Assembly: GCF_044704955.1 (NCBI RefSeq)
Contig: NC_091987.1
Span: 188,728,001-188,792,000, forward strand
Length of the DNA stretch: 64,000 nucleotides
Origin: Pristiophorus japonicus
Taxonomy: Eukaryota
Reading direction: 5' to 3'
Below the pieces are notes generated by a model. That model searched no databases, was not told the DNA's origin, and saw only the letters and a list, made by a program, of their open reading frames with translations. Below, piece after piece: positions 2,054 through 53,336 of this stretch; position 1 is the stretch's first letter, and every line of letters begins with the position of its first letter. Both the position numbers and the translations under genes were made by a program.

Positions 2054-2075
2054 TTAGAACTTCCTGAACTGTACA
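2054..2075 (-). CDS. IgSF receptor exon 7: terminal coding exon (S)VQFRKF-stop
   Basis: Acceptor tttatcattgcAG after a 117-bp intron; phase-2 join gives TAA at 2056-2054 and a total CDS of 1200 nt. Confidence 0.5.
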
Positions 2076-2192
2076 CTGCAATGATAAAGGTTTGTTGCTC
2101 AGTGTTTGTATATTATTTGCCATAAATTATATCAAACATTTGTTCAATCTATCATTTATACTAAAAGAGTAGCGTGCTCGGTTGTGACTTAC

Positions 2193-2217
2193 CTACAGTT
2201 GCAAGGGCCGTACCGAT
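2193..2217 (-). CDS. IgSF receptor exon 6: cytoplasmic micro-exon DRYGPCNC
   Basis: Acceptor cttatttcacAG and donor TAG|GTAAGT around a 25-bp open exon (phase 1/2). Confidence 0.62.
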
Positions 2218-2617
2218 CTGTGAAATAAGAATAATTATGCATCATGAAGAAAATTCTGCACTCTTTATATGTTTCATTGTTGTGACATTTGAGATTATTT
2301 CTTAAAGCTCTGTTTGATTATTATTGCATTGAAAGCTCTCATTTCTGCATTGTCTTGATGCATTAGTTGTGGCTGGTGTTTGTTGCTTTTTTGTTTGGTA
2401 GTTGCTATTGCTGCAGAATCAGAATCCGTTCCCCACCACTCTCTTGCTGACTGCTACTATTTTACTAATTTTTCAGCATGGGAATTCCTTTTCACAATTC
2501 TTATGGTGCTCCTAGATGTAGAAGAGGAAAACATTTACGTGTAGGTAAGAAAATCAGGCATACTTCACCTGAGGCATTTGGTATCATTGTTGCAGGAGCT
2601 TCATGTTCAGGTCTTGG

Positions 2618-2788
2618 TGTAATAAGAGTTCCACCTAGTGGACTACTGCCCCACCTAGTGGACTACTGTGGTAAGGCAACTGCTGATGTATAATAATAAA
2701 AGGGTCATGTGACCAGGTCACCTGACAAGTTTTCAGTAGAGCCATCTTGTAGCCTGTGTGTTTATGATGTCGTAAGGATGATATCACA
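2618..2788. mobile_element. Solo LTR (171 bp) with 5-bp TSD CTTGG
   Basis: TGT...ACA termini; CTTGG at 2613-2617 and 2789-2793; internal AATAAA and a tandem ccacctagtggactactg repeat. Confidence 0.8.
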
Positions 2789-3484
2789 CTTGGCACATCT
2801 ATATACCTTTATAATTCACAATAGAGACTATGACTGAATTATGCGCACTTCTTGACCAGGATCTCTACTTACAGGGACAGATCTGCCGGGAATAGAAATG
2901 TAATGCTACCATATCCTTCTAAGCCACCACTTGACACTACAGTCCAGATGAAATCTCAGATTTCTTTAATGAAATAACATATCTTACTACATGTAAGCAC
3001 GTCTCTTAACCACCTCCAAAATGTCTATGCATTGCAGATAATTTTCAGAAATGTCTATTTTTACAACCTTGTTCCAGCATAAGCCCCTTTAGTTCAGAAC
3101 CAATCGAACATCTACACCTTTTCACATAGCTCCATTAATATTTATGTTTATCATCATCCATTTAAATTACTATTTCATTTGATGCAGCGATTCAGTGCTG
3201 AATAGCATGCTCATCCATCATTTGTGACATGCTATCTCTTTGACACTTCACTTACTGCATCCTGCAACCACTCTGTACAACTGCAATAATGGTGCTGCCT
3301 ATCATTTTCCCAGGACCAGTCATTGTAGGAAAACCTTATTGAGCAGGTTTGATGGCTTGATTTTTTTTTTGCTCATTCCAAATTCTCTTAACTAACCCAA
3401 ATCACATCAAGTGGTGAATAAGTTAATGCCTATTAAAACTGTCACTTCGCATTTGTGTTTCTCATCAGCTATTGGTTAATTTAC

Positions 3485-3568
3485 CTTTCCATTTACTGCT
3501 CCAGATCAGTAATAAAATGACAGACACCACAAAGATTGGCACTGATACAGATCGGAGGAGAAAACTAC
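3485..3568 (-). CDS. IgSF receptor exon 5: transmembrane SSFLLRSVSVPIFVVSVILLLIWSSKWK
   Basis: Acceptor ttccttcacAG, donor AAG|GTAAAT, 84 bp, phase 1/1; hydrophobic run followed by basic stop-transfer residues. Confidence 0.85.
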
Positions 3569-4290
3569 CTGTGAAGGAACAGAAAAGTAGTTTGAGTTTC
3601 TTATAATCTGCTTCAGTGCAAAATAATGGCGACAAATGCTAGCTAAATTGTATTCCTGGTGTATTGACTCAATATTGTAATATCTTCAAGATATGTGAAT
3701 TAAATTTCATTTTCTCTATTAGTACCAGTTGGACCTTGGTCCCACTGTGCAGGAGGTAGAAATACATTAGTCCTTATTTCTACAATTCAGTTAGTCTTAG
3801 CCACATAATATTACTGTTTTAAGCTTAGTACAAACCTCAGACCTGCATTATAGATAAAGCTATTTTCACCAATACTGCTAATCTATCTGTATTTGAGTTG
3901 GTTTCCATCAATCTATATTCTTTTCAAGAAATTCTCGATGAGATGAAATATTGACTCAGCCCTCAAGACATTTGTGCCGGGTGATGTATGGCATATTCAT
4001 ACACACATTATAGAATCTTGGATATGATGCCCATTTCATGTGTCAAGATGTTGAATCACACTTCATGCAAAATGTTATCTAAATGTAAACAATCCACCAT
4101 TAGCAATTTGTTGTGAGCCAATCAAATCATTCAAAATCCTTTTTGAAAATAATTTCATCCACTTTTTCTCTTCTGTAACTAAAATTTCTAATATCCAAAA
4201 TAAAGTTTTAAAGAAAAAAAAATTAAACTACATATTTCACAATGACATAATTAACTTTATGACTTATTACACATTTAACTTAATTAACTT

Positions 4291-4420
4291 CAACCACTGT
4301 CTGTCCCACCTGTGACAGAGACTGTAATTCCCGTATTGGACTGTTCAGTCACCTGAGAACTCACTTTTGAAGTGGAAGCAAGTCGTCCTCGATTTCTAGC
4401 GACTGCCTATGATGATGGTG
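4291..4420 (+). mobile_element. 5'-truncated RTE LINE 3' end with 9-bp TSD AATTAACTT
   Basis: Same 3' tail (GGAAGCAAGTC...GACTGCCTATGATGATG) as the RTE at 60440-61543; TSD at 4282-4290 and 4421-4429. Confidence 0.8.
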
Positions 4421-5096
4421 AATTAACTTTATCCACTAAGTTGACTTTTGATACCCTATTTGAGTTTTTCCTTCAAGGCCTCAGTCTGCTTCAAAAGCCT
4501 GGGAATTAATGGGACTTTAAAAAAAAATGATACCTCAAAACAGATGGAAATATTTTCAACCGCATCTGTTTATTCTGAGTATGTGCAGTTTGCAGAATTG
4601 TCCAGCATGCAACCTGTGTATCAAGATGAGTTGATGCCCCTAATTTTGTCAGAATTTTAGAGTTTTTACGTTAACTTGTATGTAAGTTACATTTTTGAGA
4701 CACAAGCAAGGCTAGTGCTGTTGCGAAAGAAGGATGAAATACTACGATGGCAGAGATGAATTATATTGATACCTCTGAGGCCAGCTCAAGCAACTCAGAG
4801 AGATGAGACCACAAGATCTACTACGTTGGTTTGAAAGAATCAGTTTGTACAAGATGTAGGAATATTGCTAATGTTGCTAAACTGCAAGCTTATCAGCAAT
4901 GAACTGAATTAGCTAGTCTTAATATATCTGACATACTAACTATTCAAAGCTGTTAACTTGGCAGCTATATGTGAAGACTAACTGAAAGGACCTTGCTATC
5001 TGATAATCTTGGGCCTTAAGTATAATATCAACTTCCAATAAGTAGAGTCCAAATTATGTTGATTTACTGTGATCCTTTCAAATGGCTGTTATATAA

Positions 5097-5460
5097 GAAC
5101 ATACATAAGAACATAAGAAATAGGAGCAGGAGTTGGCCATTTGACCCTTGAGCCTGTTCCGCCATTGAATAAGATCATGGCTGATCTGATCCTGGCCTTG
5201 ACTCCCCTTTCTGCCCGCTCCCCATAACCCTTGACTCTCTCATCATTCAAAAATCTATCGCCACCTTAAATATATGACCCAGCTTCCACAGCTCTCTGGG
5301 GTAGAGAATTCCAAAGATTCACGACCCTCTGAGAGAAGAAATACCTCCTCATTTCCATTTTAAATAGGCGACCCCTTTTCTGGAACTATGTTCTAGATTC
5401 CCTTACGAGGGAAAACATTCTCTCTGCATCTACCCTGTCAAGCCCCCTCAGAATCTTGTT
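5097..5460 (-). mobile_element. CR1 (HER1-like) LINE 3' fragment
   Basis: (ACATAAGA)n tail and 3' UTR shared with the other CR1 copies in the window. Confidence 0.85.
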
Positions 5461-6070
5461 GCTTCAATCTGTTGTAACCTTGCATACTAATTAATCAGTT
5501 AATAGCATCTACTCAAGTGCCTTGTGTACTTATAATGTTTAATATTAAAAATGCTGCTAATTGTATTATCATAAGTATATTAATAATGAAATGTTAGTTT
5601 ATGATTTCATTGCCTGACTTTCTCTCTTTGAGGTTACCTCCTTCTCTCAGCAGTGTACTGGCCCTCTGAAGGTGGTTGATTGCAGGTTAATATTCTGCAG
5701 ACTGGTTAATGTTAGATGGTTCAAGTGAGCAAAACTTAGGTATTTAGTCATCCTCTAGATATGGATGGTAAATCCCCAGATGATTTTTTGGACGGGGAAT
5801 TAAGGTGAAGAAGTTAAGAAGTAATCTGGTACTTTTCTTAGGTGTGGTTGCATGGTTTGTGGCCTTACTGATCACAGAATTACTTTCCTTACAGGTCTGT
5901 ATGCTAGAGAACTAAATCATCTTCGTTTGGCATGTGAACAGGCATTAGAGAGACAAAAGATGAGTTAATGTTTTAACTTTACAATAAATTACTCTTGTCT
6001 CCGTTTGTTCTACACTAAGAATTCATAATGAAGAAACATTCCCTTTTGCAGGTAGCATCGTTGCACTTAC

Positions 6071-6388
6071 TTTTCCAACCAGATGTTATGTATATTACAA
6101 CAGCATGTTCCTTTAAGCCATAGTCATTGAACGCTCTGCAAATATACTCTCCACTGTCTGAATCATCAATACTTGCTTTCGTGTAGCCTAAATTGCTTTT
6201 TCCAGAATACAATTGAATTCTTTGTCCCCGTGATTTCTTTTCCCAGGTAACTGATGGTGCTGGGTTACTGTCTGCTGTACAATTTAGTTCAAGAAATGAC
6301 TGTGGCATAACATTGATGGTGCACTGGAGCAGTGGACAGAGCTTATCTGAATCAGAAGTCCTGTAATGTATGATGGGCTGTGGGCCAT
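6071..6388 (-). CDS. IgSF receptor exon 4: C2/I-set Ig domain
   Basis: Acceptor gattcAG, donor A|GTAAGT, 318 bp, phase 1/1. Begins YGP; motifs LNCTADSNPAPSVTW and DSGEYICRAFN. Confidence 0.93.
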
Positions 6389-6806
6389 CTGAATCGGACA
6401 ATAGAAATGGAAAGTAATTAGTCATATTGGCTATGAATAGGAAAAAGCCCACTAACCAGGCCCATTTCAGTAGATGGACCTTACCTTCTCCAGATTTACC
6501 TCAATCTCTGTGTCTTCAGAAACACATCTAGTAGAATCTTGAGAACATTTATATTATAATTCAGAAGTCTTTCCTTATATTTTATTTCATAAATGTTTGC
6601 ACCTTGTTTGAAAAGTCCCACTGACTTCCCCTTTTATTCTTAACTTTTTCATTTCTAATCTGGATCCCTTGGTATTTGAACCCTTCACCATGGCGAATAG
6701 TTTGGGCAGATCAGATTAATCATTTTCATTAACATTATTCTGGCTACTTTGTAAACTTAAACAAAAATTACTAATTAGGATGAATGGTCTTTGGCCTGAA
6801 ACCTTG

Positions 6807-7177
6807 GGGGTGAAATTCACCATCGTCTCGTTCGGGGCGCTAAATTTAAAAAGTTTGAAAAGTAAGTGCCAGGCACTAACGATTTCATACTTTAACAAAA
6901 ATTCACCGTTTGCGATCCCAGAAATCAAGCGCTCCACTTCCTTCTTGGAGCGCTAACGGAATTAGGTGGGGCGGGGACCCCAGTAGCACTGCACACTGGG
7001 CTGTGCAGCACTGCCGCGTTCAAAGGGCCCTTCCCTCCTTATAGGCTCTGCAATATAAAATGGAGCGGCAGGCCCACCCGATCAGCCCAGCATTTCGTGG
7101 GAGTCGGTAGCGGTACCACGCCCCATTAGCGTCCCACGGGGCACTAACGGGAGGTGCAAATGCACCCAATTTCTCCC
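6807..7177. mobile_element. Harbinger-type MITE
   Basis: GC-rich; imperfect TIR GGGGTGAAATT...AATTTCTCCC. Confidence 0.55.
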
Positions 7178-7277
7178 TCCTTAACTCTATTTCTCTCTCC
7201 ATGGATGCTGAGTATTTCCAGCATTTTCTCTTTTAATTACCAATTAGGAATGTCATTTACCAACATGGAATCCGTAG

Positions 7278-8008
7278 GGGGTGAAATTCGGGTAGTTTGC
7301 GCCTCCCGTTCTAACGGGGCACAAATAACTTTTCGCCTGGGGTGTGGTGCCACTACCAACTCGCGTGAAATTCAGCAAGAGTTTAGCGACGGTACTAACC
7401 AGTAGTGCCCCGCTCCTGCCAAGCCGGGTTGCTGCACCAGCGATGACGTCATCACCATGCGCAGTGACCTGTTTTCACTTCGGAGCACAAATTCGGTAGT
7501 GCCCCGTGAGACTGCCGTGGGCGATGTCTGCGCCAGCTGGGCAGGATGCATATCAGGCTTTATTCTGCTCGAGTGGCAAAAATTAAAGGGGAGGCGCGGC
7601 GCTGACATTCTTTAAAATGGCCGAGTTTCCGGTTGCGGCCTTGCCTTTTTCAATTCGCGGGGTCCGTGTCACGATGTTGCAGCCCGGCACTTCGCTTCTA
7701 TACTGGGCTGCTGCCATGACAGCCCGCTCCTCAATGGTGTAGTGTTGGCCCCTTCTCCCTGATGCAGAGTTTGCAGTGTGCCCTCCCCACTAATGAAAGG
7801 GGAGGGGCCTGTGTTCCCGCCAGCACTGGAAAATTCCCGAGGTTGGCACCCCAGTCCCGCCCCCGAGAGGAAGTGGAGCACGCGACATTGCGCTGTACTT
7901 CCTTTTGGGGGCGGTAAATCCAATTTAGCTCACGGGGCGGGACTTCTGCACCTGGCACATGAAGTCCCACCTCGTGGCTGTTACCTGGGTGGTATGCAAT
8001 TTTGCCCC
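7278..8008. mobile_element. Harbinger-type MITE
   Basis: TIR GGGGTGAAATT...AATTTTGCCCC; internal similarity to the elements at 62077 and 63075. Confidence 0.65.
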
Positions 8009-8690
8009 ATAGACTGTAATTCTGCATTGAAATCAACAATTTCTACAAGTAAAGCAGACAGCCTCAATGATCAGTCTACTAAATTCCAATATATTCGCTA
8101 AAGAGAAATGTATCCTGTTGAAAAGTATATCATTTTAAGTGTTAAGTCTATCTTAAATGTTATAAAAATGAGATTTCTACACTTTGTTTCTTGCTGTTCC
8201 TTGTACTGTGTTTCCTTTTTCCGCAAAAGTGTTTTGGTGAATTTTCCATGCTCATCAAGGCAGGAATTTTAGCAAAGAAGAGTGGACCACCTTTTGATTG
8301 TCTGCTTCAAGCACTCCCAAGTCAAGTACAGCACAGCCAGCTTCAGAGTCAAGCTCTTCCTACTCACCATTGCCCCAACTACAGAAGAGCAATCCCATCT
8401 GCAGAGCCATTTTCATTAAGATTGCTCAACTCATGTAAGACAGTTACACCCAACCAGCCGGATTTCAGACTCCGATCCCAGAGCTGAAAGGGCAATGTGC
8501 TAACTTGGATACTTCAAGCTCAAACTGCCCATTCACATACAGTCCAGCCTGACATTGCCAAATTATCTTTTGTAAAGCTTCAGTGAAGCAGTTAGCAACT
8601 AGGCCACCTCAGACTTCCATTAGAAGTGTGCTACCTAATCTAAAATTAAACACACAAGGCCATCAAAAAAACAAAAGTTAAAATACTTAC

Positions 8691-9038
8691 AATTCACATT
8701 TAATGTTATATGTTTTATTATCCGCTCGTTACTTGTCGTATGAAGGACTTGACAAGTACAGATTGTCCCGTGGTCTTGCGAGATGGGGATAAATGTCATT
8801 TGACTGGTAATGCTAAATGTGCCATCTGAGTTCCTCGAGGGGGGCAGCATAATTGTATATTTAGTATTATCATTGGCTTTTGAAGATTGAGCATTGTGAG
8901 AAATGGTTTGATCTTGGTGTAGCCATTTAATGGAGATATTCTGAGGATAAAATCCCCTAGCAAGGCAGTGCAAAGAAGACTCATTCATGGCTACTAATTT
9001 TTCTTGAGTAATAGAAATTGCTGGAGGAGATGGTGGAA
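8691..9038 (-). CDS. IgSF receptor exon 3: C1-set Ig domain
   Basis: Acceptor tgttacAG, donor T|GTAAGT, 348 bp, phase 1/1. C1 motifs LHCLARGFYPQNISIKW, NSDGTFSITSQM, CTCQVLH. Confidence 0.93.
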
Positions 9039-9064
9039 CTGTAACATACAATGCAAAATAAAGT

Positions 9065-9435
9065 TATAAGAACATTAACATAACAACATAAGAATTAGGA
9101 GCAGGAGTAGGCCATTTGGCCCCTTGAACCTGCTCTGCCATTCAATAAATAAATGGCTGAACTTCTACCTCAACTCCTGCACTGTCCCCATACCCCTTGA
9201 TTCCCTTAATATCCAAAAATCTATTGATCTCTGTCTTGAATATATTCAAAGACGTTGTAATTAAATGCAATGTTGTATTTAAATGCCAAAGAAAACAATA
9301 GTAAACCAAGGGGTATGGTGAGAAAGCAGGAATGGGGTACTGAAGTTGCATGTTCAGCCATGAACTCATTGAATGGCGGTGCAGGCTAGAAGGGCCGAAT
9401 GGCCTACTCCTGCACCTAGTTTCTATGTTTCTAAT
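9065..9435. mobile_element. Two short, oppositely oriented CR1 3' ends
   Basis: Minus copy ~9065-9250; plus copy ~9305-9435, nearly identical to 26785-26915. Confidence 0.8.
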
Positions 9436-10330
9436 GTCGAGCAAGCTTTACATACTCAATGCATGTAGCAATTCCATTTCAATAAGGGAATTATGCAAAG
9501 GATATTCGGGGGGGGGGGGGGGCGGGCAACATGAATATAATTTGCATCTCATGATTGGTGAAGGTCACATAACCCATTGAGTTGCAGAGTCCCATAAAAG
9601 GACTTCCCATTAGTGATAAGAATGCTATTTTAGTTACTCATTTTAATGATTTTGTCTAATATGTGAAATTTTGCATGAGGCCCAATATCCTTTTCAATGG
9701 GCATTGGGCAATTTCACCTCTAGGCCCAGATTCAGTAGATGCATTTCAATGTGGGCACCACCTCTTCCTGTGCCATGGATCATTGTTACTGTGATAGATG
9801 TAAGTATCTATATTCTCTTTATATTGTAGTGATGCTTTTTGATTATGTTGCTAATTTAAGATGCCAACAGATAGCCGGAAATTACCATCGGATTTGTGGC
9901 AAAATGTCTGAACATTTTTACTGGATTTTCAAGCAATGAAGGATCTGAAATTATATCAGATTTGTTTGTAAGATCTTAAGTTAAATTGAATTATTATGTA
10001 TGATTGGGAAAAAAGTAAGAATTGGAAATGAAGAACCTAAATTATATGTGTATTATGCTTACACTAATATTATAAATGGAGTTATTGCAGCTAAAGTTGA
10101 CATTTTCTAAAAAAAACTACAAATATATTTCCAGTTGTAAAACATGCATTCTCCCAATGAGTTGCAAATATTATTAATGTTAAAAAACAACATTTTGGGA
10201 GGTGACCACACGTTCAAGGACTTTGGCGAGGATAGGAAGGTTGGAGATGGGCCTGTGGTTTGCAAGAGCAGGTCAAGGGTGACAAACGAGTGGACGAGAG
10301 TTTGTGCTTTTGGGGCTGAAGTAGAGATTT

Positions 10331-11144
10331 GAGCTCAATTTTCCCCAAAGTTTTGTTTTGGCGTACTTGAAGAGTTACGCCCGTTTTTGGGGGGTCCAAG
10401 TACACCAAAAAAAATGTTCTAAGTTTCCCTGTTTGATTTCTTCTTTTTGGCACAGCCTAACCTGTCCTTTAGTTTTGGAGGTGGAACCGTGATCTCTGCC
10501 AAAAAGATCGGGTTGCCACGGTAACCAGGGACACAATGCAGGCTGAGGCTGCAAAGTGAAACATACCACCAGCTCACAACATTAAAACACATTGCAGCAA
10601 CTTACCTCCAATTATTAAAATGTGTCTCCCCCCACCATCACCCCTGATGCCGGTGCCAATCCCTGCCCCTATCCCAGGCCGAATGGCCTCCCGGTCTGCT
10701 CCCCCGCTCCTAGCCCTGGCTGAATGACCTCCCGGTCCACTCCCCCGCCCCTAGCCTTGGCTGAATGGCCTCCCAGTCCCCGCACCTAACTAAACCCGAA
10801 AGGCTTCCCCCGCCACCCCTCTCTCTCACCTCTCCTGTTACTGCTGTCCAGGCATCTGCTGCACTTACCTGCGCCAATTTCCTTAATGCTCCAGAAGGTT
10901 TTTCTGCAGAGGCCACATACGCTGGCCTAAGAAGAACTGAAGTAACTTTCAGCTGGCCAAACTTGCCTAAATGGCCCGAATTGGAACAGGCGGCATGTTA
11001 CGCCCCTTTGGCTGAAAAAAAAAACTTATCTAAAAAAAATCGTAACTGAGTTACACTGGTGCAAATTAATCGGGGAATCTACGTTTTTTTAAACTTAGGC
11101 CTGCTCCGAAAAAACGGCGCAAATCACAGGGAAAAATTGAGCCC
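10331..11144. mobile_element. Harbinger-type MITE
   Basis: TIR GAGCTCAATTTTCCCC...GGGAAAAATTGAGCCC. Confidence 0.7.
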
Positions 11145-11147
11145 TAT

Positions 11148-12044
11148 GGGCCCAAGTTTCCCTAATAAAAAATAATGGCGCTCACTTACCTGGACGCCCG
11201 TTTTTATTTGGCCCCTTAACGCTGAAAATAAAAAACCAAAGTCTCCTTCCAACATGCGCACCTTCTGGCGCCGGCACTACCCAAGTTGAACTGGCAGGGC
11301 GTGGCTTCCAGTGTGCACCGGAACTATACAGCGCATGCGCCAGAAAGAAAACTGAGCAAGTAATGCGCATGCATACAAAAAAACCCTGCGCATGTGCTAT
11401 ACAAGGACCGCATGGATGGAGGACCTTCGGCCAGGGTGAGCAGCGGCTGTAGTTAAGGAGGAGAAACGGCAGAAGGCTTCATTTTTCCAGCTTCTTTGGA
11501 ATACCTGGTGGATGTCTCGGAAGATGGATTAACTTTGAAGAATTTTTTAAGATTTTGATTGATTTTGGAATCCAGAAACATCGATGGAAAAAGATTCATT
11601 TTTTAAAATTTTATGGCCTGAATGCAGTTTAACATCGCAGGAGCAGCATTATTGGTAAGTTTTCATTTAACAGTTTAATTTTTGTACTTACTTAAATTGT
11701 GCTAAAAGTCAAAGTTTTAGTGAGGGAGTCCATTCGGCCGGGAATAGGAACGGGCCAGTGCGGGTTTCTCCAACTGAAGGTAAGGTTTTTTCCTACGGTA
11801 ATTATAGGGTCTTTGTGCCGGGTTAAACAGTTTTGTATGATGGAAACTTGGTCTTAAGCCCAGAAATGGCGCGGGAAAAATCTTCACAGGTACATCAGCG
11901 CCAAAATGTTTGGCCCCAAACACTCTGGTGCTGGTAGTACACGCTGGTGCCCCAATACTGGGGAATCTTTGAACTGGCCTTCGGTGCCAAAAAACTCACT
12001 GAGCACCGAATAAATGCCACCCAGTGCTGGGGAAAATTTGGGCC
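11148..12044. mobile_element. Harbinger-type MITE abutting the previous one (3-bp TAT spacer)
   Basis: TIR GGGCCCAAGTTTCCC...GGGAAAATTTGGGCC. Confidence 0.7.
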
Positions 12045-12428
12045 AAAGACTGGTGGGTGCCAAAAAGGATGGTTTCAGACTTATTGATGCTGGGTTGGAG
12101 AAAGTGCAAGCCAATCCACAACTTGATGTCAGACAGGTAGTTAATCATCAATTATTATTTTTCTTTCAACCCATTTGTGGGGGAGGGGAGTCAAAAAGTT
12201 GGTTCAGTGAAACTGTATTTTTGGCCCTTTATGGATTCCACGAATAAAAAAATCATTGGACAGCACAGACAAGGAAGGGCCTAGGCCCAATCTTTATGCT
12301 GATTTAGCCAATATCAGTTGGGAATAATATACAACAGTTGGCTTCAGCATTCCTGGGCTATGGAGAAGAAATAGTCCTCAGGATTGCCACTGTGGATTAC
12401 CAACAGGAAGCCCCTCTACTGACACTGT

Positions 12429-12801
12429 GGGGCAGAAATTCAGGTCCGCCCGAAACGGGTCGCACCTACCGCTGTTGTTGTGTTTTCTCCGCCACGTTGG
12501 ATGTGGTGGCCTCTTGCGTGAAATTCAGCTCTTTGTCATTTTTTTTCGAGCGGCCCGGAAGTCGGTCATAATGGGGGTGGTAATGCGGCGCTGAGCTCAC
12601 TAGAGAGGTGGAAGTGGAAGTGGGACGGCGTCTCCGCCACTGTCGGTCATCAGTGTAGCGCCAGAACCGCCAGAAAAAGCACCTAAGAGAATTTCGCTGG
12701 CGGTGGCAATTGGACTCCAAATTGTCAGCCACTTGACCCCATTGCTTGGCCGCCGCTTTCCGGCGGTAAGAGACGTTTTCGGGCGGTTGAATTTCGGCCC
12801 C
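12429..12801. mobile_element. Harbinger-type MITE with 3-bp TSD TGT
   Basis: TIR GGGGCAGAAATTCA / TGAATTTCGGCCCC, with TGT on both sides. Confidence 0.8.
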
Positions 12802-13246
12802 TGTATCTGCAGGCCTAGGTTTAATTGTAATGGAGTAGGACCACATTTTATTATTCCCATATTTGGCTGAGGCACTGATCAGAATACCTACTGTAGAAAC
12901 AAACATAAGAAAGAATAGAATGAGAAAGGGCCTGTGGCCCACCAAGTTCTTTCTAAGTACCAAGTGCCATTTTCCCCATCATGAATTCACTGAATCCTCT
13001 GAGTAAAGATTCTATGAAGTTTGTAAAGCCCCAAAGAGAAATCACACGGAACTCTAGCCTACCTATCCAACATTCTTCATTCTGGATCAATTGCGCTTTC
13101 ATGGTCCCAGCAGTTCAGAACTCCTCGCATTGAACATTCTGTTGCATTATCTTTACCTGTACATACTCTATTAAATTATTTACTGTAACAATAGTTAGAC
13201 ATATAAAACTATTATCCATTTCTGATAATATATACACCCAATTTAC

Positions 13247-13591
13247 CATCGACATGTAATCGTGTTCCTGGTCCTCTGCTCTCTACCGGCGGGTAGACAG
13301 GTATCACCACTACACAGGTATAATTATAATCGGAGATTGTGAAAGAAACATTTTCAATCTTCAATGATGTAGCACAGTGCTTAAAACCACCTGGAGCAAT
13401 GTCAGGAATGCAGGTATGCTTACTCGTTCCATAGTGAACATCAGCGATCCCTGGAGAGCTAATATACCACTTTATATGGACCCAATCACTCTCATTTGCA
13501 ATGTAATTAAAGGTACAGTTTAATGTGGCTGACTTTCCTCGCAGGACGCTGACTCGACGTGGCTGAGTCACATTCCTTATCTCCGGATGAC
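13247..13591 (-). CDS. IgSF receptor exon 2: VJ-type V-set Ig domain
   Basis: Acceptor ttgttccatcAG, donor G|GTAAAT, 345 bp, phase 1/1. Motifs VTQP...ATLNCTF...IKWY...LKIENV...YTC and a J-like GPGTRLHV in the same exon. Confidence 0.92.
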
Positions 13592-14075
13592 CTGATGGAA
13601 CAAAATGTATCAATTGCTGAATGTAATCTTAGACCCAGTCAGGTTCATCTACAAATAATGGGGAAGGTTTGTTAGTTATTGTGAAATTGTAAATGGGTAT
13701 AATTTGCATGTTCACAATATTACTATGAAGAGAGGAAGTTATCCCATAATAAAGAAAATTACAGCAAAAAATCATCAGAAATTTGGTGAATTTAAGTGTT
13801 TACATTGCGGAGTTAATCCCCTGCTTTATTAAGTGCATTTAGGTTATCTAACTATGATTAAATATTCTTGTTTACAATCCAGCAGTATATTATATTAATA
13901 TTGAAAGGTGGAGCCATTAAGGCAAGAACAGTATCTTCCTGATGTGTTGGGTTGTGCAGAGGAAGAGAGGTGCTGTCAGATGCAGACAGCACCAGGGTTT
14001 GGGGCCAGAGCTGTTCCACTGGTTTGGGCAGAATGGGAGGGTAATGCTGATCCATCTCTTGTAATTGGAGAATCC

Positions 14076-14311
14076 TGTCATGTATGTAGACCATGTACAC
14101 TAACTGTATAGTCACATAAGGTGTGCCACCAAAGGGCACTGCAGTGGGAGACCTGAGGGTCACTTGCATAGGTGTGCAGGGCCTAGTATTAAAGGCTGCC
14201 CACCATGCTTACCTCACTCTGGAGTTAAAATAAATGGGACTAAGGTCACAACATCTCAAGTACAATACTAGACCTCGTGGAGTCATTCATAAGAGTACTA
14301 AAGACATAACA
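14076..14311 (+). mobile_element. Solo Gypsy-type LTR (236 bp) with 5-bp TSD AATCC
   Basis: TGTCATGTAT...ATAACA termini, AATCC on both flanks, AATAAA; starts like the Gypsy LTR at 51021 read on the minus strand. Confidence 0.85.
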
Positions 14312-14764
14312 AATCCCTTGTAAGGATGCAACATTAGATACAAAACCTACTACCACAAATTTACAGGCAGGAGAATTTGCCTGCTGTGCTCGTCCTCCCA
14401 CACACGTTTGAGGGCATAATGACTCAGTCTGATGATGTTTCCCCCATTTCCCTCAGGTGAGTTTTATTCCCATCTATAGCCAGACGGAACTATGTTTGCG
14501 ATGAAAATATTTGTGCAGTTGCTTGTTTATTTCAAGAAAATTAACATCCGACTATTATTGTTCTCTTTGCATCATCTTACATTCCGAACCTGGTGACACT
14601 TGTTCTAAGTGTATCTTAATAAATAGACCTCCTTTCATTAAAACATTTCCATTCCTCCCTCTCCTAAGGCATCTATTTTTTTCTTGAACGGTTCCAAGGT
14701 TATTGTCTCTACTACACTGCCTTGAAACCGATTCTATGCGTTGGTCAGTCTGTGTGAATAAACT

Positions 14765-15452
14765 GTCATTATCATCATAGGCAGTCCCTCGGAATCGAGG
14801 AAGACTTGCTTCCACTCTTAAAATGAGTCCTTAGGTGGCTGAACAGTTCAATATGAGAGCCACAGTCCCTGTCACAGGTAGGACAAATAGTCGTTGAGGG
14901 TAAGGGTGGGTGGGACAGATTTTCCGCATGCTCTTTCCGCTGCCTGCGCTTGATTTCTGCATGCTCTTGGCGATGAGACTCAAGGTGCTCAGCACCCTTC
15001 CAGATGCACTTCCTCCACTTAGGGCGGTCTTTGCCCAGGGACTCCCAGGTGTCAGTTGGGATGTTGCACTTTTTCAGGGAGGCTTTCAGGGTATCCCTGC
15101 AATGTTTCTTCTACCCCCGCCCCCCCCTTTGGCTCGTTTGCCGTGAAGAAGTTCTGAGTAGAGCGCTTGCTTTGGGAGTCTCATGTCTGGCATGCAGACA
15201 TGGCCTGCCCAATGGAGTTGATCGAGTGTGGTCAGTGCTTCAATGCTGGGGATGTTGGCGCGTCTGGCCTTCGGGGCCTTTGTAGGATCTTGCGGAGACA
15301 TCGTTGGTGGTATTTCAGCAGCGACTTGAGGTGTTTACTGTTAATGGTCCATGTCTCTGAGTCATACAGGAGGGCGGGTATTACTACAGCCCTGTAGACC
15401 ATGAGCTTGGTGGCAGATTTGAGGGCCTGGTCTTCGAACACTCTTTTCCTCA
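14765..15452 (-). mobile_element. RTE LINE 3' fragment
   Basis: KRVFEDQALKSATKLMVYRAVVIPALLY...RLPKQALYSEL and a (TGA)n tail. Confidence 0.9.
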
Positions 15453-15601
15453 CTGTAGCCTATCCATGGAGGACGTCCCTGGGGTTTGAAATTGTAGCCT
15501 ACAACGTTTTTTATTAAATATTTGTGGATGGAAGTCACGACAGCTGTTAACTCGCAAACTTTAAGAATTATGTAGCAAGTAGAAATTGTGCCTCAATCTA
15601 T

Positions 15602-16243
15602 GGGCTGGATTTTCAGTTCTGGTCATTTTGGGGTGGTAATGGCGGTAGGGTGGTAAAGTTTGTGCTGTGAAATGGTTTGTGTCCACAGCCACAAAGTTCA
15701 TCAGCCTGGCCTCGAGTTCGGAGCGATGTGCTAAGGGAGACGTTGCATACCTCTTTTAGGGCACTCGGCCAGCTGAGCAAGCAAAATTCCCGAGTTAAAC
15801 AGCCGGCCTCAGAGCACTGTAAGAGAGGACTGAGGGGGGTGGGGGAGGGAGAAACTCTGTTTAAAAAATAAACACCAAAAACATTCCCAATACATTACTC
15901 ACACCACAACATAAATCGCAAAAAAATATTTTAAATCACACTTACCTGAGGTCGACATTACTTAACTCACTGTGGCCGCTGCAGCTTTCACAGGCGATCC
16001 TAGCAGGGCACTCTACAAAGCGCTATGGGTCAGGCGACCCAATAATCGAGCCGGTGTCGCAACCAGGGACATTGCACACCGGCTCGCCACTTCCGAGCGT
16101 TTATGCTCCGCGCCCCCTCCAAACCAGCACCGAATTTCCCGGCGGGGCGCTAGAAGCTGGCTGCCGGCCGTAAGTGCTCACCACCGCCATTGCACCCCCC
16201 TCCGGGGCACTAACAGGGGCGGCAGAAGACCGAAAATTCAGCC
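15602..16243. mobile_element. Harbinger-type MITE
   Basis: TIR GGGCTGGATTTTC...GAAAATTCAGCC; GC-rich. Confidence 0.65.
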
Positions 16244-17374
16244 AAATATGTTTCATTTAAATTGTAGCACTAATAATGGATTAAGTCACTGATACATCGA
16301 TAGGCTTTGTTTGGTAACGGTATCAAGGGATATGGAGCAAAGGCAAGTGAATGGAATTGAGCTGCAGGTCATCCATGATCTAATTCAATGACAAGGCTCG
16401 AGGGGCTAAATGGCCCTGTTCCTATGTCAAAGTATAATTATACTGCCACTTTCACGTCAAATGGTTTCAGGGCGTAACAACACAAAAGTGGATTGATAAC
16501 TTGGGTTTGGATTAGCATCTGACTTTCCAACACACTAAAATAAGAATTGAAATGCTGTGCAGTAGATAATCACAGTCTGTTTGGAGCTTACACGAGTTGC
16601 AGTATAACTGCAGCCCAATGCAAAGTCGGACTTTAAAAGTACCCAGGCCTTTCATTGAATCCCCTGGGAACTTCAAAAATATCTTATTAAAATCTTTGTA
16701 ATGCTGTGAGAATGCTAGCCATCCTGGTCGTGCTCTCTTAATGTTAAAAATGATTCGTCCATGAACAGAGCTCCGTGCAGGCATTCAAGCATAGTTGGGC
16801 TGTAGTTAAGTTTACAGTGTGAGGTGCTGTGGCAGTGTATCTCAGATCTCCTGGCTGACCATTACACTGTGTAGTTGCTGGTTTGAGTGTTACGTGTGGA
16901 ATTACAGCACCCTTTGATATTAACTATAAAAACAATTGTCCAATTATAAATCTCTAAGCTTGTCCTCTTCAGGTCTCCAGCCAGAAAGGGCATGGATTAT
17001 CATCACCACACATTTGAGACTTGGAAATAATCTGTGTCAATCTTCAGCAATCCAACATAGCTGCTCAGAACACCTGACTCAAGGTCACAAATGCAGGTCA
17101 CGCTATTCCCTTTTGATATATTGATGCATAATTGTCAAAGTGAAGCCCCTGTATCAGATTGTATGGATCCAGTCAGCAGAATTAAGTATATAGTTCAATG
17201 CGACAGACTGAACTCTCGAGGCCACTGACTAGATGCTGTCAAGTCACCTCCCCAATAACCAGGATACCTGATAGGTTATGTTCAGTAGAGGAGACATTTT
17301 ATCCTGAGACCCGATCGCACCTGAAATATTATAAAGAAAATCGGAATGACAATTTTAAAAAAAAACATGGAAGA

Positions 17375-19810
17375 GGGGGGAGTTTTAACCTGGAGGAGCG
17401 CGCGGGTTTGGATGTGGGTGCGGGGTTAAAACTGGCAGAAATGCGAGCGCGTCGGGAAGCCGGCTCCAACCCGACAATTTCTGCGGTTCACTCGAACGTG
17501 TTGGGCTGCTTACTCGTGCCCTCGAGACAAAAGGGGTTCCTATTAACATGTACATGGAGTGCCGCAACCTACAAGGCTGTGGACCAAAAGCTGGGATTAG
17601 GATTGGACAGCCGTAAATTTCTATGATATGGTAGTCGCTTAATTGGAGCGATATTTCAACACAGTTTTACATTTAGCACTGCGTCCACGGGTTTCCCGGG
17701 CTTTCTGAAACTCAGCATTGAAAGCAAGGGGACAACACAACGGCAATTGAGGGGGCTGATTAAAACTCAGGGAAATACTGTATTAAATACTCAGCACTCA
17801 CAGCTGCTTTTTTTTTAACCTACGAGTGGGAAAGGGTTTGTTCATACTACTTTTGTTGAGAGTTTACTTTCTACACTATGGAGGTTTTCTGAATCACAGC
17901 AAGATGGCGAGGAGGACGAGGAGCAATATGAGCAGCAGCCTGCAGCTGGACAACAGAGAGGAGGGCAGCTCGCAGGAGGCACTGCCTGTGACACGGGGTG
18001 TACAGGCAGAGGCCGAGTTTCCTTGATGAGACAGAACAGCAGTGCTTCAGGAGGCTCGGGTTGTCACATCAGTTGGTCTCAGACATTTGTAGCCTCCGAG
18101 AAGAAGACCTGCTCCCTGCTCAACCTGGAGGCCAGGCATTGCCAGTAGCTGTGAAAGAGCAGGAGTAGGCCATTTGGCCCCTCGAGCCTGCTCCGCCATT
18201 CAATAAGATCATGGCTGATCTGATCCGAGCCTCAACCTTTTTGTCTCCGGGTCCTTCCAGGGCTCTGCCCGAGACACATCTAGGATCTCCGAGTTGGTGG
18301 CCCAGAAATGCATTGCCCTCATCAATATCCTCCTCTTTGTTTTCCTCCGACTCTGAATTGTCCATAGACGATCTGTGCTCTGAATCTTGTTCCTCCTGCA
18401 GTGACAAACCTCGCTACTGTGCAATGTTGTGCAGAGCGCCACACATCGACCATTGTGGACACCCTGGCTGGTGTCTCCAGTTCTGTCTAGGCACCTGAAG
18501 CACATCTTCAGCATGCTGATGGCTTGACCATATGAACATAAGAAATAGGAGCAGGAGTAGGCCATTTGGCCCCTCGAGCCTGCTCCGCCATTCAATAAGA
18601 TCATGGCTGATCTGATCCGAGCCTCAACTCCGCTTTCCTGCCCTTTCCCCATAACCCTTGACTCCCTTGTCGTTTAAAAATCTGCTATCTCCACCTTGAA
18701 TATATTCAAAGACCCAGCCTCCACAGCTCTCTGGGGTAGAGAAATCCAAAGATTCACACCTCAGAGAAGAAATTCCTCCTCATTTCCATTTTAAATGGGC
18801 GACCCCTTATTCTGAAACAATGCCCCCATAAGGGGAAACATCCTCTCTGCGCCTACCCTGTCAAGCCCTCTCATAATCTTATATGTTTCAATAAGATTAC
18901 CTCTCATTTTTCTAAACTCCAATGAGTATAGGCCCAATCTGCTCAACCTTTCTTCATATGACAGCCCCTTCATCTCGGAATGATCACGCATTGGGCTAGA
19001 AGTGGAAGCACTTTGACTGTCCATGTCTCACTTCCATGACCCCTTTCACCATCATCCCTCTCGTGGGTCAGCTGCACTTGACGTCTGTCGCTCTGCTGGA
19101 GAGCACTTTGGTACAGATCGGTGCGACACTGTAAGGCCAAAGATAAGGTATCTGTCATTCTATTTAAGGCGGTAGATATGTTTGCATTCAGAGTGTGCAC
19201 AGCTCTGGTCAAGGCTTTCACGGACTCATTTGTTTGTCGCATTTTATGTTACACGGAGTTGGCCACTCTATCCATGAAAGAAGGCATTGTTGCAATGCCC
19301 TGCAACAGTGGCCAACTTATTCTTGTGGCGGACTCCTCCATTCTCTCTGCAATTGTGGTCAGTGTGCTTAGAAAGTCTGTGAGTGCCTCACACTTTCTCT
19401 GCTGCTCCTCAATCCTTATCCTTTTCATTGACAACCCATGGGGTACAGCACCGATGTCCAGCTGAGCAGAGCTTGGAGAGGGCTGCACTCTCTGAATTGA
19501 ACTCTCCACAGCTACCCCTGCCACCACTATCTGCTCTTGCTCACTTGTGAAGTGTGAGTTACCAAGTGAAAAACCTATCTGTCTAACTGGTCCCACTGAA
19601 GTGCGAGTATCTGAGCTGCTAAATAGTATGGATGATGGATGGATATATGATGGATGGATAGATGGGGATGTGAGGAAGTGCATAGAAAGAGAAAGGGTGT
19701 ATGTGCAAGCTAAGTGGGCATGAGGAGCAATATGATGGAGTAGGCTTGACAAGGCAGAGTGAGGGTGTGGGTGGTCCATAGCAGGATGTTGGTGAATGCA
19801 ACCTTACCTT
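17375..19810. mobile_element. Rearranged PIF/Harbinger remnant with a CR1 insertion
   Basis: Transposase N-part on + (~17900-18290: VYRQRPSFLD...ALPVAVK...SGSFQ). Inverted C-part on - (~18300-18530: MLKMCFRCLDR, ALHNIA). Minus-strand CR1 3' end at ~18530-18985. Myb-gene-like C-terminal ORF on - at 18990-19620, resembling the ORF at 42361. Confidence 0.7.
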
Positions 19811-19824
19811 ATCTGGTTAGATCA

Positions 19825-20132
19825 TTAAGGCTGTTGAGAAGCAAGAGGAACTAGCAGAGGATCTAACCATCATTTTCCAATCCTCTATGGCTACAAGAGT
19901 GGTGCCAAAGGACTGGAGGACAGCTAATGTTGTTCCTTTGTTTAACAAGGGTGAAAGGGATAGACCGAGTAATTAAAGGCCAGTCAGCCTAACCTTGGTG
20001 ATGGGAAAATTATTGGAAAAAATCCTGAGGGACAGGATAAATCTTCATTTGGAAAGACACAGATTAATCAAGGACAGTCAGCCTGGATTTGTAAAGGGAA
20101 AGTCATGTCTGACTAACTTGATTGAATTTTTC
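19825..20132 (+). mobile_element. CR1 internal RT fragment
   Basis: DWRTANVVPLF...RPVSLT...GFVKGKSCLTNLIEFF. Confidence 0.85.
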
Positions 20133-20249
20133 GACTTCCTGCTGTGGGCCACCCATACCCTCACTGTCTTGTAAAGCCAAATCCATGTTTCTGTGAATTT
20201 TATAGTATATAAACTCAGGTTACAAACTAAATCATTGTTAAAACACAAT

Positions 20250-20894
20250 GACCCTGAAATTCCGGTCGGAGGCTTTCTTCGGACGAACGCCTCCGCCCCG
20301 AAATTTCTCTTCGAATGTACCAGGTGGTTTCAGAGGCTCCTTTGATTCCGGTCGGATGCCTTCTTTCCACGCGCTTCCCCGTCTACGAGATACAGTTGGA
20401 GAAGCCGGAGTCACATGGGCCTGGACAACCAATCACGATACAGTATTCTCATTGATAGTAATGGGAACTCCGATTTTATGAGTTCCCATTACTATCAATG
20501 AGAAAAAAACCCTAAAACACCCAAACACAACATAATAAATAAAATAAAAAAAACACATATATTTTAAATTAATTGAAATTAAAGTTAATTAAATGTTATG
20601 GAATGTGTTTTAATAGGATTTAAAATAAACTTACCTTAGTGGACAGGGTTTTTACTATAAAAATGTGTATTTACATTTTATTTTTATATGTTTTAAAACT
20701 CTTACACTGGTAAAAATAGGCAATGCAAATAGCCCAATCTCTCCCTCGCGGATGTCCTTCTCCCGGGGATCTTGACAGATCGGAAAAGCTGGTTTTCGGC
20801 ACATGTGCATTGCGCGCCAAAAAACGGCTTTTGCTAGGTCTCGCCCAGTCCGTATGTATTCCGTATGGACCTGGCGAGGCCAGAATTTCAGGGC
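20250..20894. mobile_element. Harbinger-type MITE
   Basis: TIR GACCCTGAAATTC...GAATTTCAGGGC; internal palindrome ctcattgatagtaatgggaactc...gagttcccattactatcaatgag. Confidence 0.65.
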
Positions 20895-21365
20895 TAATAT
20901 TTTAGAATTTAAGTAATAACCCGGTATTCATTTTCACTGTAAAGTTGCTGTACATGTTACCCTGTGAACAATTTGAATTTTAGTGCCCGATCCTCCCTCT
21001 GAACTTCAATCTACAACAGGATTCCAGCAACATCTGCACTCTATTCTATGTCTTCTGAATTCAGTTCAGTTTATTAATTCCTTCAAAGTATCTCATTTAT
21101 ACACAATTCTTTAAAGTACAGCTTTGGCCAACATTTATAATCAGTAAGCAATTTTGCATCATTTTATTCTATTGAAAAATGATCCACTAAGTGGAATTTT
21201 TTTTTCAAACTAATATATTTAAGTTATATTAATTGCTACAGACATTTTATTTGAATGATCCAGTAGTGTTACTCTTAATTGTTTAATATTCATTTGTGAT
21301 GAGTCTCAGTCTGAACCAAATCTGTTAGAGAGATTGGATGAAAGAACTTTAATCAGAGCACTAAC

Positions 21366-21423
21366 CTGCTACACCAGTCTGTGTCAGAAGGAACATTGTC
21401 AGCTGTAGTAATATGCTCTCCAT
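21366..21423 (-). CDS. IgSF receptor exon 1: signal peptide MESILLQLTMFLLTQTGVA(G)
   Basis: ATG in GGAATGG context, 19-aa hydrophobic leader, phase-1 donor CAG|GTTAGT; joins in frame to the V exon (GVA-GHPEIRNVTQP). Confidence 0.8.
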
Positions 21424-21871: not shown

Positions 21872-23140
21872 ATAGATTTGAATATAGGGAGTATGATTAA
21901 GAGGTTTATAGACAATACAAAAATTGACTGTGTGGTTGATAATGAAGAGGAAAGTCATGGGCTGCAGGAGGATATCAATCTACTAGTTAGGTGGGCAGAG
22001 CAGTGGCAAATGGAATTTAATTCAGAGAAGTTTGAGGTGATGCATTTTGGGAGGGCTAATAAGGAAAGAATATACACATTAAGCGGTAGGCCACTTAATA
22101 ATGTAGATGAACAAAGGGATTTTGGAGTGCTTGTCCACAGATCCCTGAAAGTAGCAGGCCAGGTGGATAAGGTGGTTAAGAAGGCATACGGAATGCTTGC
22201 CTTTATTGGCCAAGGCATAGAATATAGGAGCAGGGAGGTTATGCTTAAATTATATAATATTTTGGTTAGGCCACAGCTGGAGTACGGCGTGCAGTTCTGG
22301 TCGCCGTATTATAGGAAGGACATGATTGTACGAGAGTGGGTGCAGAGATTTATAGGATGCTGCCTGGAATGGAGAATCTTAGTTATGAGGACAGATTGGA
22401 TAGACTGGGTTTGTTCTCATTGGAACAGAGGAGGTTGAGAAGAGACCTCATTGAGGTGTAAAAAATATTGAGGGGCCTGGACACAGTGGATAGTAAGGGT
22501 CTATTTCCATTGGTGGAGGGGGTCTATTACGAGGGGCTATAGTTTTAAAATGGTTGGTGGAAGGTTTAGAGGGGATTTGAGGGGGGGGGGGGTTTCTTTA
22601 CGCAGAGGGTTGTGGGGATCTGGAATTCGCTGCCTGGAAGAGTGGTGGATGCAGAAACCCTCATCACTTTTAAGAGATGGTTAGATGGGCATTTAAAGTG
22701 CAGTAACCTGCAGGGTTATGGACCTCGAGCTGGTAATTGGGATTAGACTGGATGACCTTTTGTTGGAGGGCACAGATATAATGGTAAGTACTGCAGGGAA
22801 TAGAATACGGCCAGGGTGATTTCTCTGGATGGGTCGGAGAGGGATTTTCCCAGATTTTTTTCTCCCTAAATTGGCCTGGGTTTTTATCTGGTTTTTGTCT
22901 TTCCCAGGAGATCACATGACTCCAGAGTATAGAATGTTTCAGTATAAGGGGTGTCGCAGTTGTGGTGAGACGGATTGGTTGGGCTGGGTGCTCTTTGCCT
23001 TTCCGTCAATATTCATAGGTTTATATGTAACCTTTAGGGCTGCTGACCGAGGGCCATGTGGCTCTTTGTCAGCTGGCGTGTACATGATGGGCCGAAATGG
23101 CCTCCTTCTGCACTGTAAATTTCTATGTTTCTATGTTTTT
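21872..23140 (+). mobile_element. CR1 LINE 3' fragment with long 3' UTR
   Basis: WQMEFN...LVRPQLEYGVQFWSP; (TTCTATGT)n tail. Confidence 0.9.
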
Positions 23141-53281: not shown

Positions 53282-53336
53282 TTTGGCAAAAAGTAATTGT
53301 CCTTATTAGATTTCAGCTTCAGTTACGGGTGCTCAT

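Follow-up and report, generated by a model that had tools for sequence, protein, structure and literature searches.

The 64-kb window that we analyzed, by which we mean the whole stretch of 64,000 nucleotides from the Japanese sawshark (Pristiophorus japonicus), carries on its minus strand an intact, transcribed gene that is already modelled in public databases. The public model is a 408-amino-acid protein from the same species (P0001) with the name "sialoadhesin-like". From its sequence, the gene is predicted to encode a type I membrane protein with a leader, then V-set, C1-set, and I-set domains, and then a transmembrane segment that contains an arginine. We argue that it is the activating-type member of an unnamed family of paired receptors with the layout VJ-C1-I, and we put the probability of this reading at roughly 60%.

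The initial annotation of this locus proposed a seven-exon gene that encodes 399 amino acids, and we reproduced that model base for base. It has AG acceptors and GT donors throughout, and its introns are in phase 1, which is usual for genes of the immunoglobulin (Ig) superfamily, in all but the last case (phase 2). The seven exons sum to 1200 nt, or 399 codons and a stop, in an open frame, and there are 0 assembly gaps inside the gene. (The joined seven-exon protein was translated to check the frame; similarity searches were run exon by exon, and at full length with P0001.) Reading along the minus strand, there is a leader exon at 21366-21423 (MESILLQLTMFLLTQTGVA plus 1 nt, with an ATG, a hydrophobic core, and a phase-1 GT donor); the V exon at 13247-13591, which encodes a V-set domain with the germline-joined J-like strand GPGTRLHV and both the canonical and an extra conserved cysteine pair; an exon for the second domain (D2) at 8691-9038, which encodes a C1-set domain (CLARGFYPQNISIKW ... 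CTCQVLH); an exon for the third domain (D3) at 6071-6388, which encodes an I-set/C2 domain (LELNCTADSNPAPSVTW ... GEYICRAFNDYG); an exon for the stalk and the transmembrane segment at 3485-3568, with a conserved arginine (SSFLLRSVSVPIFVVSVILLLIWSSKWK); a first cytoplasmic exon at 2193-2217 (DRYGPCNC, leaving phase 2), which is present in P0001; and a last exon at 2054-2075 (SVQFRKF and a stop), which is supported only by its AG acceptor and stop codon. Five of these (V, D2, D3, transmembrane, and first cytoplasmic) are identical to P0001, while both ends differ. The same five exons are 48-67% identical to orthologues from other elasmobranchs (53-64% for the sawshark D2 and 48-59% for D3), and the first cytoplasmic exon is kept in orthologues as DRCFLCN or GWCGPCN. 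As a comparison of sequences, this match to the public model and to the orthologues is far beyond chance.

The two ends of the gene are less clear. At the 3' end, P0001 runs on as RHSKRHENQGSSVKSDRVEDADAHEDKITEF, in place of SVQFRKF, and a tail of the form RHSKRHENQ...KITEF (about 31 amino acids) is common to P0001 and to the stingray and catshark orthologues. No 5-mer of the P0001 tail lies at the expected place in the window, nor does the tail match the window elsewhere. Because the orthologues conserve a tail that has no match here, it appears that the true 3' end lies to the left of coordinate 1, beyond the edge of the window. The 22-nt last exon (2075-2054) is probably spurious and not part of the gene. 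At the 5' end, P0001 begins with MSTS at 15958 (an exact match), in an alternative exon on the minus strand at 15946-16013 that contributes MSTS plus 1 nt. This start gives no signal peptide and has an in-frame TAA just upstream; the upstream limit of the exon, near 16013, comes from the length of a contig only. The leader proposed initially, MESILLQLTMFLLTQTGVAG, is similar to the leader sequences in relatives (MQLLLKLLFILQTAVQG). Among the 3254 stop-free segments of the window it comes first, with a similarity score of 28.3 against a mean of 12.6 and a standard deviation of 3.1, although the runner-up scores 26.6 and so the margin is small. We infer that this exon (21423-21366) is a putative leader. 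So of the seven-exon proposal, the frame, the splice sites, and the five exons in P0001 stand, while the last exon is probably wrong and the leader is unproven.

We also note that reading through past the D3 donor (6018-6071) gives ..SGWKSKCNDATCKRECFFIMNS followed by a stop, and that models from the epaulette shark and the small-spotted catshark (P0029 and P0035) end in similar read-through (..GSKCKSEC.. and ..GSKCQRER..). This could reflect a secreted isoform that is produced by intron retention, or merely a shared GTAAGTGC donor and truncated models.

The evidence for transcription comes from two sequencing runs from one study of the same organism, whose contigs we compared with positions 8600-13650 of the window. 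As these are contigs only, start sites, strand, and expression level cannot be read from them. Both runs behave like RNA: there is zero depth over unique intron sequence, and coverage there occurs only in repeats. A contig of 413 nt from one run (X1) covers the V exon with no mismatches and stops precisely at its donor (13247). This contig carries 64 further letters at its 5' end and runs 4 nt (TCAG) past the acceptor. The overhang fits the end of the exon at 15946 (..CCTCAG) and not the end of the earlier leader (..TAGCAG), so the sampled transcripts seem to use the exon without a signal peptide. A contig of 703 nt matches the D2 exon from 9014, and the match stops exactly at the donor at 8691 with 379 letters left over, which would correspond to the D3 exon (318) and 61 nt of the transmembrane exon. 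The second run has contigs within both the V and the D2 exons. The V and C1 exons are transcribed, with exact ends. The V-to-D2 junction is backed by P0001 and by the epaulette-shark model (..GPGTQLHVVVPPSPPAISV.. across the same boundary); that partial model, from Hemiscyllium ocellatum, joins V-C1-I across the same junction (LHV/V/VPPSPPAIS). In short, the junctions in the initial annotation stand up at the V and C1 donors, where contigs end exactly, but the TCAG overhang disagrees with its leader, and no contig joins V to C1.

Two other features of these data concern introns. Within the intron between V and D2 (12181-12340), there is a 160-nt contig from X1 on the minus strand. It has 2 mismatches, as against none in the real exons, and is most likely a copy of a repeat from elsewhere rather than an extra exon. 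Just upstream of the D2 exon (8938-9444), both runs show a repeat whose summed contig depth reaches about 4e5-7e5, from many contigs of 60-70 nt at 95-99% identity. The same repeat (peptide ..HELIEWRCRLEGPNGLL..) recurs at about 5100-5260, at 18100-18620, and at 26826. It is probably an abundant, transcribed repeat of the SINE/LINE-tail kind (short or long interspersed nuclear elements).

The order of domains that was first proposed, V and then C1-set and then C2/I, is borne out by Pfam and by matches in the PDB. The V exon matches V-set (3.8e-7), and in the PDB it is closest to V domains of lambda light chains (4e-8), where GPGTRLH aligns to the J strand GGGTKL. The D2 exon matches C1-set at 6.3e-15, as compared to 3.5e-8 for C2-set_2 (CD80-like C2-set), and its best PDB matches are the CH3 domain of IgG, UrIg2, and IgA constant domains. 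The D3 exon matches Ig_3 (6e-10) and I-set (2e-8), and in the PDB it matches the I-set domains of neurofascin, DSCAM, Robo, and titin and the third domain of MAG; a profile of the family aligns D3 with both D3 and D4 of MAG. The transmembrane exon (SSFLLRSVSVPIFVVSVILLLIW) has a single arginine four residues into the hydrophobic stretch, and a hidden Markov model (HMM) of the family hits it at 7e-5. The AlphaFold2 model of P0001 (mean confidence, or pLDDT, of 75.6) contains three Ig domains and a transmembrane helix at residues 340-371. The tail is short, about 40 amino acids, and has no tyrosine motif.

In Foldseek, the AlphaFold2 model of P0001 matches MAG Ig1-3 (3e-18), CD22 d1-3 (5e-16), and nectin-1 (7e-16); SIRP-alpha matches at 1e-13 with the best TM-score (0.48/0.61). 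A model of the V domain alone was poor (pLDDT of 70, with the G strand unmodelled), and its Foldseek matches to lambda V domains, at E of about 4e-4, are weak support. A look-alike search of the Atlas returned V-C2-I clusters (Siglec, nectin, CADM, MAG, and MCAM) with one score for all, so it does not discriminate among them. A word-based search with the V exon alone, in which candidates were limited to proteins of 63-200 amino acids, gave no match.

The head of this protein does look like that of an antigen receptor, at least by sequence, as the initial annotation stated. Using HMMER against 1.84 billion representative sequences, the V exon had 23 hits at E <= 1e-3, of which the first was P0001 (100% identical). 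Once the family itself is set aside, V domains of Ig light chains are the best matches, both there and in the PDB. A single germline exon holds V and J without a break, and the junction between them has neither the heptamer nor the nonamer of a recombination signal sequence. (A lone CACTGTG, at 13379, sits inside the codons for KHCAT.) We considered a rearranging Ig or T-cell receptor (TCR) gene and rejected it: V and J are contiguous, and there is no recombination signal at their junction.

Could the gene instead be a relic of the lineage that gave rise to antigen receptors, closer to Ig/TCR and to the UrIg proteins than to innate families? Besides the light-chain matches of V and the IgG CH3 and UrIg2 matches of D2, the family profile scores better on the V-C1 part of UrIg2 (2e-20) than on SIRP-alpha (1.4e-17). 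But these scores are modest, at 30-37% identity, and VJ-type heads are found in many innate receptors, including SIRP, NKp30, CD8, CD79, NITR, and PRARP (PMC11599192). Also, D3 is not a C1 domain, unlike in UrIg and UrIg2, whose constant domains are all of the C1 type, with up to 9-11 of them in UrIg2 (PMC12227049). Furthermore, the argument for UrIg and UrIg2 rests on their linkage to the major histocompatibility complex (MHC) or an antigen-receptor complex. We consider such a relic to be quite unlikely, and we return to the VJ-C1-I paired-receptor family.

Word-based and HMMER searches and cluster look-ups identified relatives in ten elasmobranch species and in the coelacanth. Their names in the databases are automatic ones, such as sialoadhesin-like, Siglec-5/10/11/12/13, MAG-like, and syg-2-like, and no one-to-one orthologue of a characterized gene turned up, in accord with the initial annotation. 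In a maximum-likelihood tree that was rooted on tetrapod SIRPs, the family has support of 98/98 and falls into three clades. The activating-type clade (100/100) contains the sawshark gene and relatives from the red stingray, the epaulette shark, and two catsharks. Those members whose models include the 3' part have a transmembrane arginine (FLLRSVSVPIFVV, FTHRFVTVPIFVM, FPVRSITMPIFVV) and a short tail that ends in T/S-E-F/L. The inhibitory-type clade (95/97) contains the horn shark (Heterodontus), the whale shark (Rhincodon), the zebra shark (Stegostoma), the numbfish (Narcine), and the skate (Rhinoraja). These have an uncharged transmembrane segment and a long tail with TIYAVV, which resembles an immunoreceptor tyrosine-based switch motif (ITSM); VSYADIVI, which is an immunoreceptor tyrosine-based inhibitory motif (ITIM); and SEYSVV. 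The bamboo shark (Chiloscyllium) has a further inhibitory relative, which we left out of the tree. Because both elasmobranch clades include sharks as well as rays, the split between them predates the divergence of sharks and rays.

The coelacanth (Latimeria chalumnae) has a pair of its own: a short form with a transmembrane arginine, and a long form with ESVYAVP, VPYADIVI, and SEYAEV. The two (P0015 and P0026) have nearly identical ectodomains, with branch lengths of 0.09 and 0 in the tree. They are recent duplicates of each other, by recent duplication or by gene conversion as in classical paired receptors, unlike the ancient split between the elasmobranch clades. It had been suggested that this might be a family of cartilaginous fish, and the coelacanth pair rules out that restriction. 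The idea of an activating receptor is a fair reading, given the conserved charge: as first noted, the transmembrane segment is charged, and the arginine is kept in the orthologues from Hemitrygon akajei and Scyliorhinus torazame, is mirrored in the short form of the coelacanth, and is absent from the inhibitory clade.

The V exon is 46-54% identical to the V exons of family members from seven species. This is also the range between the clades, as compared to 31-35% for D2 and D3. So V is the best conserved domain between clades, which is what one would expect if the ligand of the head has stayed related. The GxGT strand, a YPP motif before it, and the extra cysteine pair are conserved across the family. 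Within the window, the family HMM found no paralogous exon, second V exon, or neighboring paralogue. A V-like signal from tblastn at 17012-17219 (E of 0.018) was discarded as noise, as the family HMM gives it an E of 5.6.

If the sawshark protein is an activating-type member of the family, then it might work as follows. Its V head would recognize either the same ligand as the inhibitory relatives or a related one. The transmembrane arginine would recruit an adaptor that has a transmembrane aspartate and an immunoreceptor tyrosine-based activation motif (ITAM), of the FcR-gamma, CD3-zeta, or DAP12 type, and binding of the ligand would then activate the cell via this adaptor. The inhibitory relatives, which lack the charge, would use TIYAVV, VSYADIVI, and SEYSVV to recruit SHP-type phosphatases. 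The adaptor pairing, the opposite signalling, and the shared ligand are all proposed by analogy with known receptors. The arginine is near the outer end of the helix, which we take to be closer to NKp30 and NKp46 (with CD3-zeta or FcR-gamma) than to the central lysine of receptors that use DAP12, but this is a lead only.

Several points count against our interpretation. First, the arginine is only four residues into the hydrophobic stretch, so it could lie at the interface rather than within the membrane. Second, the pairing with an adaptor is proposed only by analogy with NKp30/NKp46, SIRP-beta, and Siglec-14/16. Third, the two elasmobranch clades are old and about 35-50% identical, while classical paired receptors have near-identical ectodomains, and the two clades may have different ligands. 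Fourth, the only 5' exon that fits the 4-nt overhang of the V contig yields no signal peptide, which could mean that the transcripts sampled are non-productive or that the leader exon is used elsewhere. Finally, no contig of either run spans the V-to-C1 junction in the sawshark, and the two runs are not on record as RNA, with their type and tissue unrecorded.

The gene might be a fish SIRP, with the sawshark protein as a SIRP-beta-like activating member, the inhibitory relatives as counterparts of SIRP-alpha, and a D3 that was replaced or has diverged. SIRP-alpha and SIRP-beta were the only named hits from outside of fish in the word-based searches (1e-10 with the single protein and about 1e-24 to 1e-35 with a profile). 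The J strand of pig SIRP-alpha, SGPGTRLFV, is nearly identical to RGPGTRLHV in the sawshark. Word searches favor proteins that share common exact 5-mers such as GPGTR; when V was searched without this bias, no SIRP appeared at E of 1e-3. The V domain scores 31 bits on Ig light-chain V domains and 20 bits on SIRP V. The family HMM for D2 gives 43-48 bits on the C1 domains of SIRPs, but it matches their third domain rather than their second, and D3 is an I-set domain, not C1, whose HMM matches no SIRP constant domain. With hhalign, the inhibitory clade aligns to SIRP-alpha with 98.8% probability over 330 columns, yet the alignment does not include the tails and the identity is only 19%. The tails do have similar motifs: xSYADI and SEYSVV are reminiscent of TYADL and SEYASV in SIRP-alpha, which also has the top Foldseek TM-score (0.48/0.61). 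The transmembrane charge is an arginine near the outer end, as opposed to the lysine of SIRP-beta. Overall, we think it unlikely that this is a fish SIRP.

The automatic names, which come from NCBI and UniRef, would instead make this a true Siglec, or a sialic-acid-binding lectin of the CD33/MAG kind. MAG Ig1-3 (3e-18) and CD22 d1-3 (5e-16) are the top Foldseek matches, and Siglecs likewise come in forms with ITIMs and forms with a charged transmembrane segment. Also, the family profile aligns with MAG over three domains. This alignment is strong at the end of D2, in the D2-D3 linker (LdvkYgP), and in D3 (SNPxP..W and gxYwCxAxNxyG), but the V part is weak, and the column of the essential F-strand arginine of MAG (YYFR) has T, I, or P in the family (YNYTC, YKYIC, YDYPC). 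In the V domains of Siglecs, there is an intrasheet disulfide between strands B and E and a cysteine that links to the next domain, but no B-F pair. In this family, the canonical B-F cysteines (LNC ... YTC) are conserved in every member that has a V domain. We saw no cysteine in the GESV..NC stretch of the relatives' V domains, where Siglecs carry their inter-domain cysteine, and the extra pair has the form C..C before strand E. The V domain ends in a J strand of the GxGT form, and it is matched best by Ig light chains. As for whether the family has C2 domains of the Siglec type along with ITIMs, MAG is matched well by D3 and by the final part of D2, and the relatives carry ITIM/ITSM, while in the activating clade C1-set is the better-scoring model for D2. 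Similarity to Siglecs and MAG in D2-D3 is the source of the database names, and it is very unlikely that these names are correct.

A third possibility is an adhesion molecule of the nectin/PVR/CADM type (V-C1-C2) that is not an immune receptor. The ectodomains of nectin-1, nectin-3, Necl-4, and CD155 match the model in Foldseek (7e-16 to 8e-13), the Atlas neighbors include nectin-3 and CADM clusters, D2 also matches C2-set_2, which is the nectin-type second domain, and the T/S-E-F/L at the end of the tail resembles a class I PDZ ligand. However, no nectin was among the hits of the sequence searches, and both the conserved transmembrane arginine and the ITIM/ITSM tails that occur in relatives are characteristic of immune receptors. 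Nor is a J-type G strand known to be a feature of nectins. We view a nectin-like adhesion molecule as extremely unlikely. Because some of the features that define Siglecs, SIRPs, UrIgs, and rearranging receptors are not found in this gene, we have filed it under none of these, and a separate family of VJ-C1-I paired receptors is our preferred description. The initial annotation called the gene a mosaic that matches no recognized mammalian gene; the layout is unusual, but there are clear relatives for its parts: SIRP for V-C1, the J strand, and the tail motifs, and Siglec/MAG or nectin for D2-D3.

The remainder of the window consists of transposons, an endogenous retrovirus-like element, and masked repeats, with no neighboring gene. 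From the list of open reading frames (ORFs), the retrovirus-like element lies on the minus strand at 52004-58295 and has long open frames: a gag-like frame (56749-57549, plus 57597-58295 upstream), pol at 53705-56390 (reverse transcriptase, RNase H, and integrase), and, at 52004-52817, an env-like frame with a motif of the CX6CC type, all on the minus strand. A second pol, of the Gypsy/retrovirus-like kind, is in several broken frames (protease, reverse transcriptase, and integrase) on the minus strand at 47216-50112. On the plus strand, there is a LINE-type reverse transcriptase ORF of 507 amino acids at 25296-26819. Further fragments of reverse transcriptases are at 21878-22438, 31893-32837, and 60422-61477. 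We also note that 24649-29793 contains seven runs of N (2533 bases in total) within a C/T-rich simple repeat. This repeat translates as PLSPS-type strings in every frame, which leads to false ORFs of up to 1289 amino acids.

Why might this family matter? To ask what it was that the RAG transposon invaded, one compares non-rearranging receptors with VJ heads, such as SIRP, NKp30, UrIg, PRARP, and NITR. This family adds an unusual V-C1-I layout to that list, along with an activating/inhibitory split that is older than the divergence of sharks and rays and a counterpart pair in the coelacanth. As for the origins of antigen receptors, any relevance of the family would rest on linkage to the MHC or its paralogous regions, and nothing is settled until its linkage group is known. 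A recent survey dated the SIRP and Siglec families to the level of tetrapods (2026; PMC13262535), so a related pair in sharks and in the coelacanth is of some interest. One could imagine a pre-tetrapod lineage that combined a VJ-C1 head, an I-set stalk of the Siglec/nectin type, and a tail with ITIM/ITSM, and that is a relative or precursor, on the fish side, of the paired receptors of the SIRP and/or CD33-type Siglec families, or else a relic of antigen-receptor precursors beside UrIg and UrIg2; we find either version doubtful. More practically, the family has been hidden under misleading names (Siglec, MAG, and sialoadhesin), and the finding that there is no sign of a sialic-acid-binding site corrects this annotation. 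For shark immunology, there is now a candidate receptor pair, one activating and one inhibitory, that could be sought on leukocytes. We found no published description of a VJ-C1-I family in the literature on SIRPs, Siglecs, paired receptors in cartilaginous fish, and PRARP, although our search was not exhaustive.

How does the family compare to known systems? Like SIRPs, it places a VJ-type V domain that does not rearrange ahead of a C1-set domain, and V ends in a J-like GxGT strand that is present in the germline. It also has the paired design, in which the inhibitory form has tyrosine motifs in its tail and the activating form has a transmembrane charge and a short tail. Unlike SIRPs, which are V-C1-C1, it is V-C1-I, and the identity is only about 19-28%. 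With Siglecs, it shares ITIM and ITIM-like tails in some members, partners with a transmembrane charge (as in Siglec-14/16), and the best overall structural match over three domains, but the family is without the arginine that binds sialic acid and has a J-type G strand and a C1-like D2. The nectin/PVR/CADM proteins have an ectodomain of the same size with a V-C1-like-C2/I arrangement, but we did not find that a conserved transmembrane charge, or a design with ITSM/ITIM kin, has been reported for nectins.

NKp30, an activating form, has a transmembrane arginine. NKp30, PRARP, APAR, and NITR all place a germline VJ head on an innate-type receptor (PMC11599192 lists these as VJ-type members of the Ig superfamily). 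By their descriptions, they are set apart from this family by having a single V domain, or V and C2/I, with no V-C1-I. In UrIg and UrIg2, which are likewise from cartilaginous fish, a VJ exon that does not rearrange also precedes a C1 domain; in the PDB, the UrIg2 structure (9dmx) is one of the top matches of D2 and also of V and D2 together. No paired activating/inhibitory design has been described for UrIg and UrIg2, whereas the family that we describe here has such a design and combines one C1 domain with one I-set domain.

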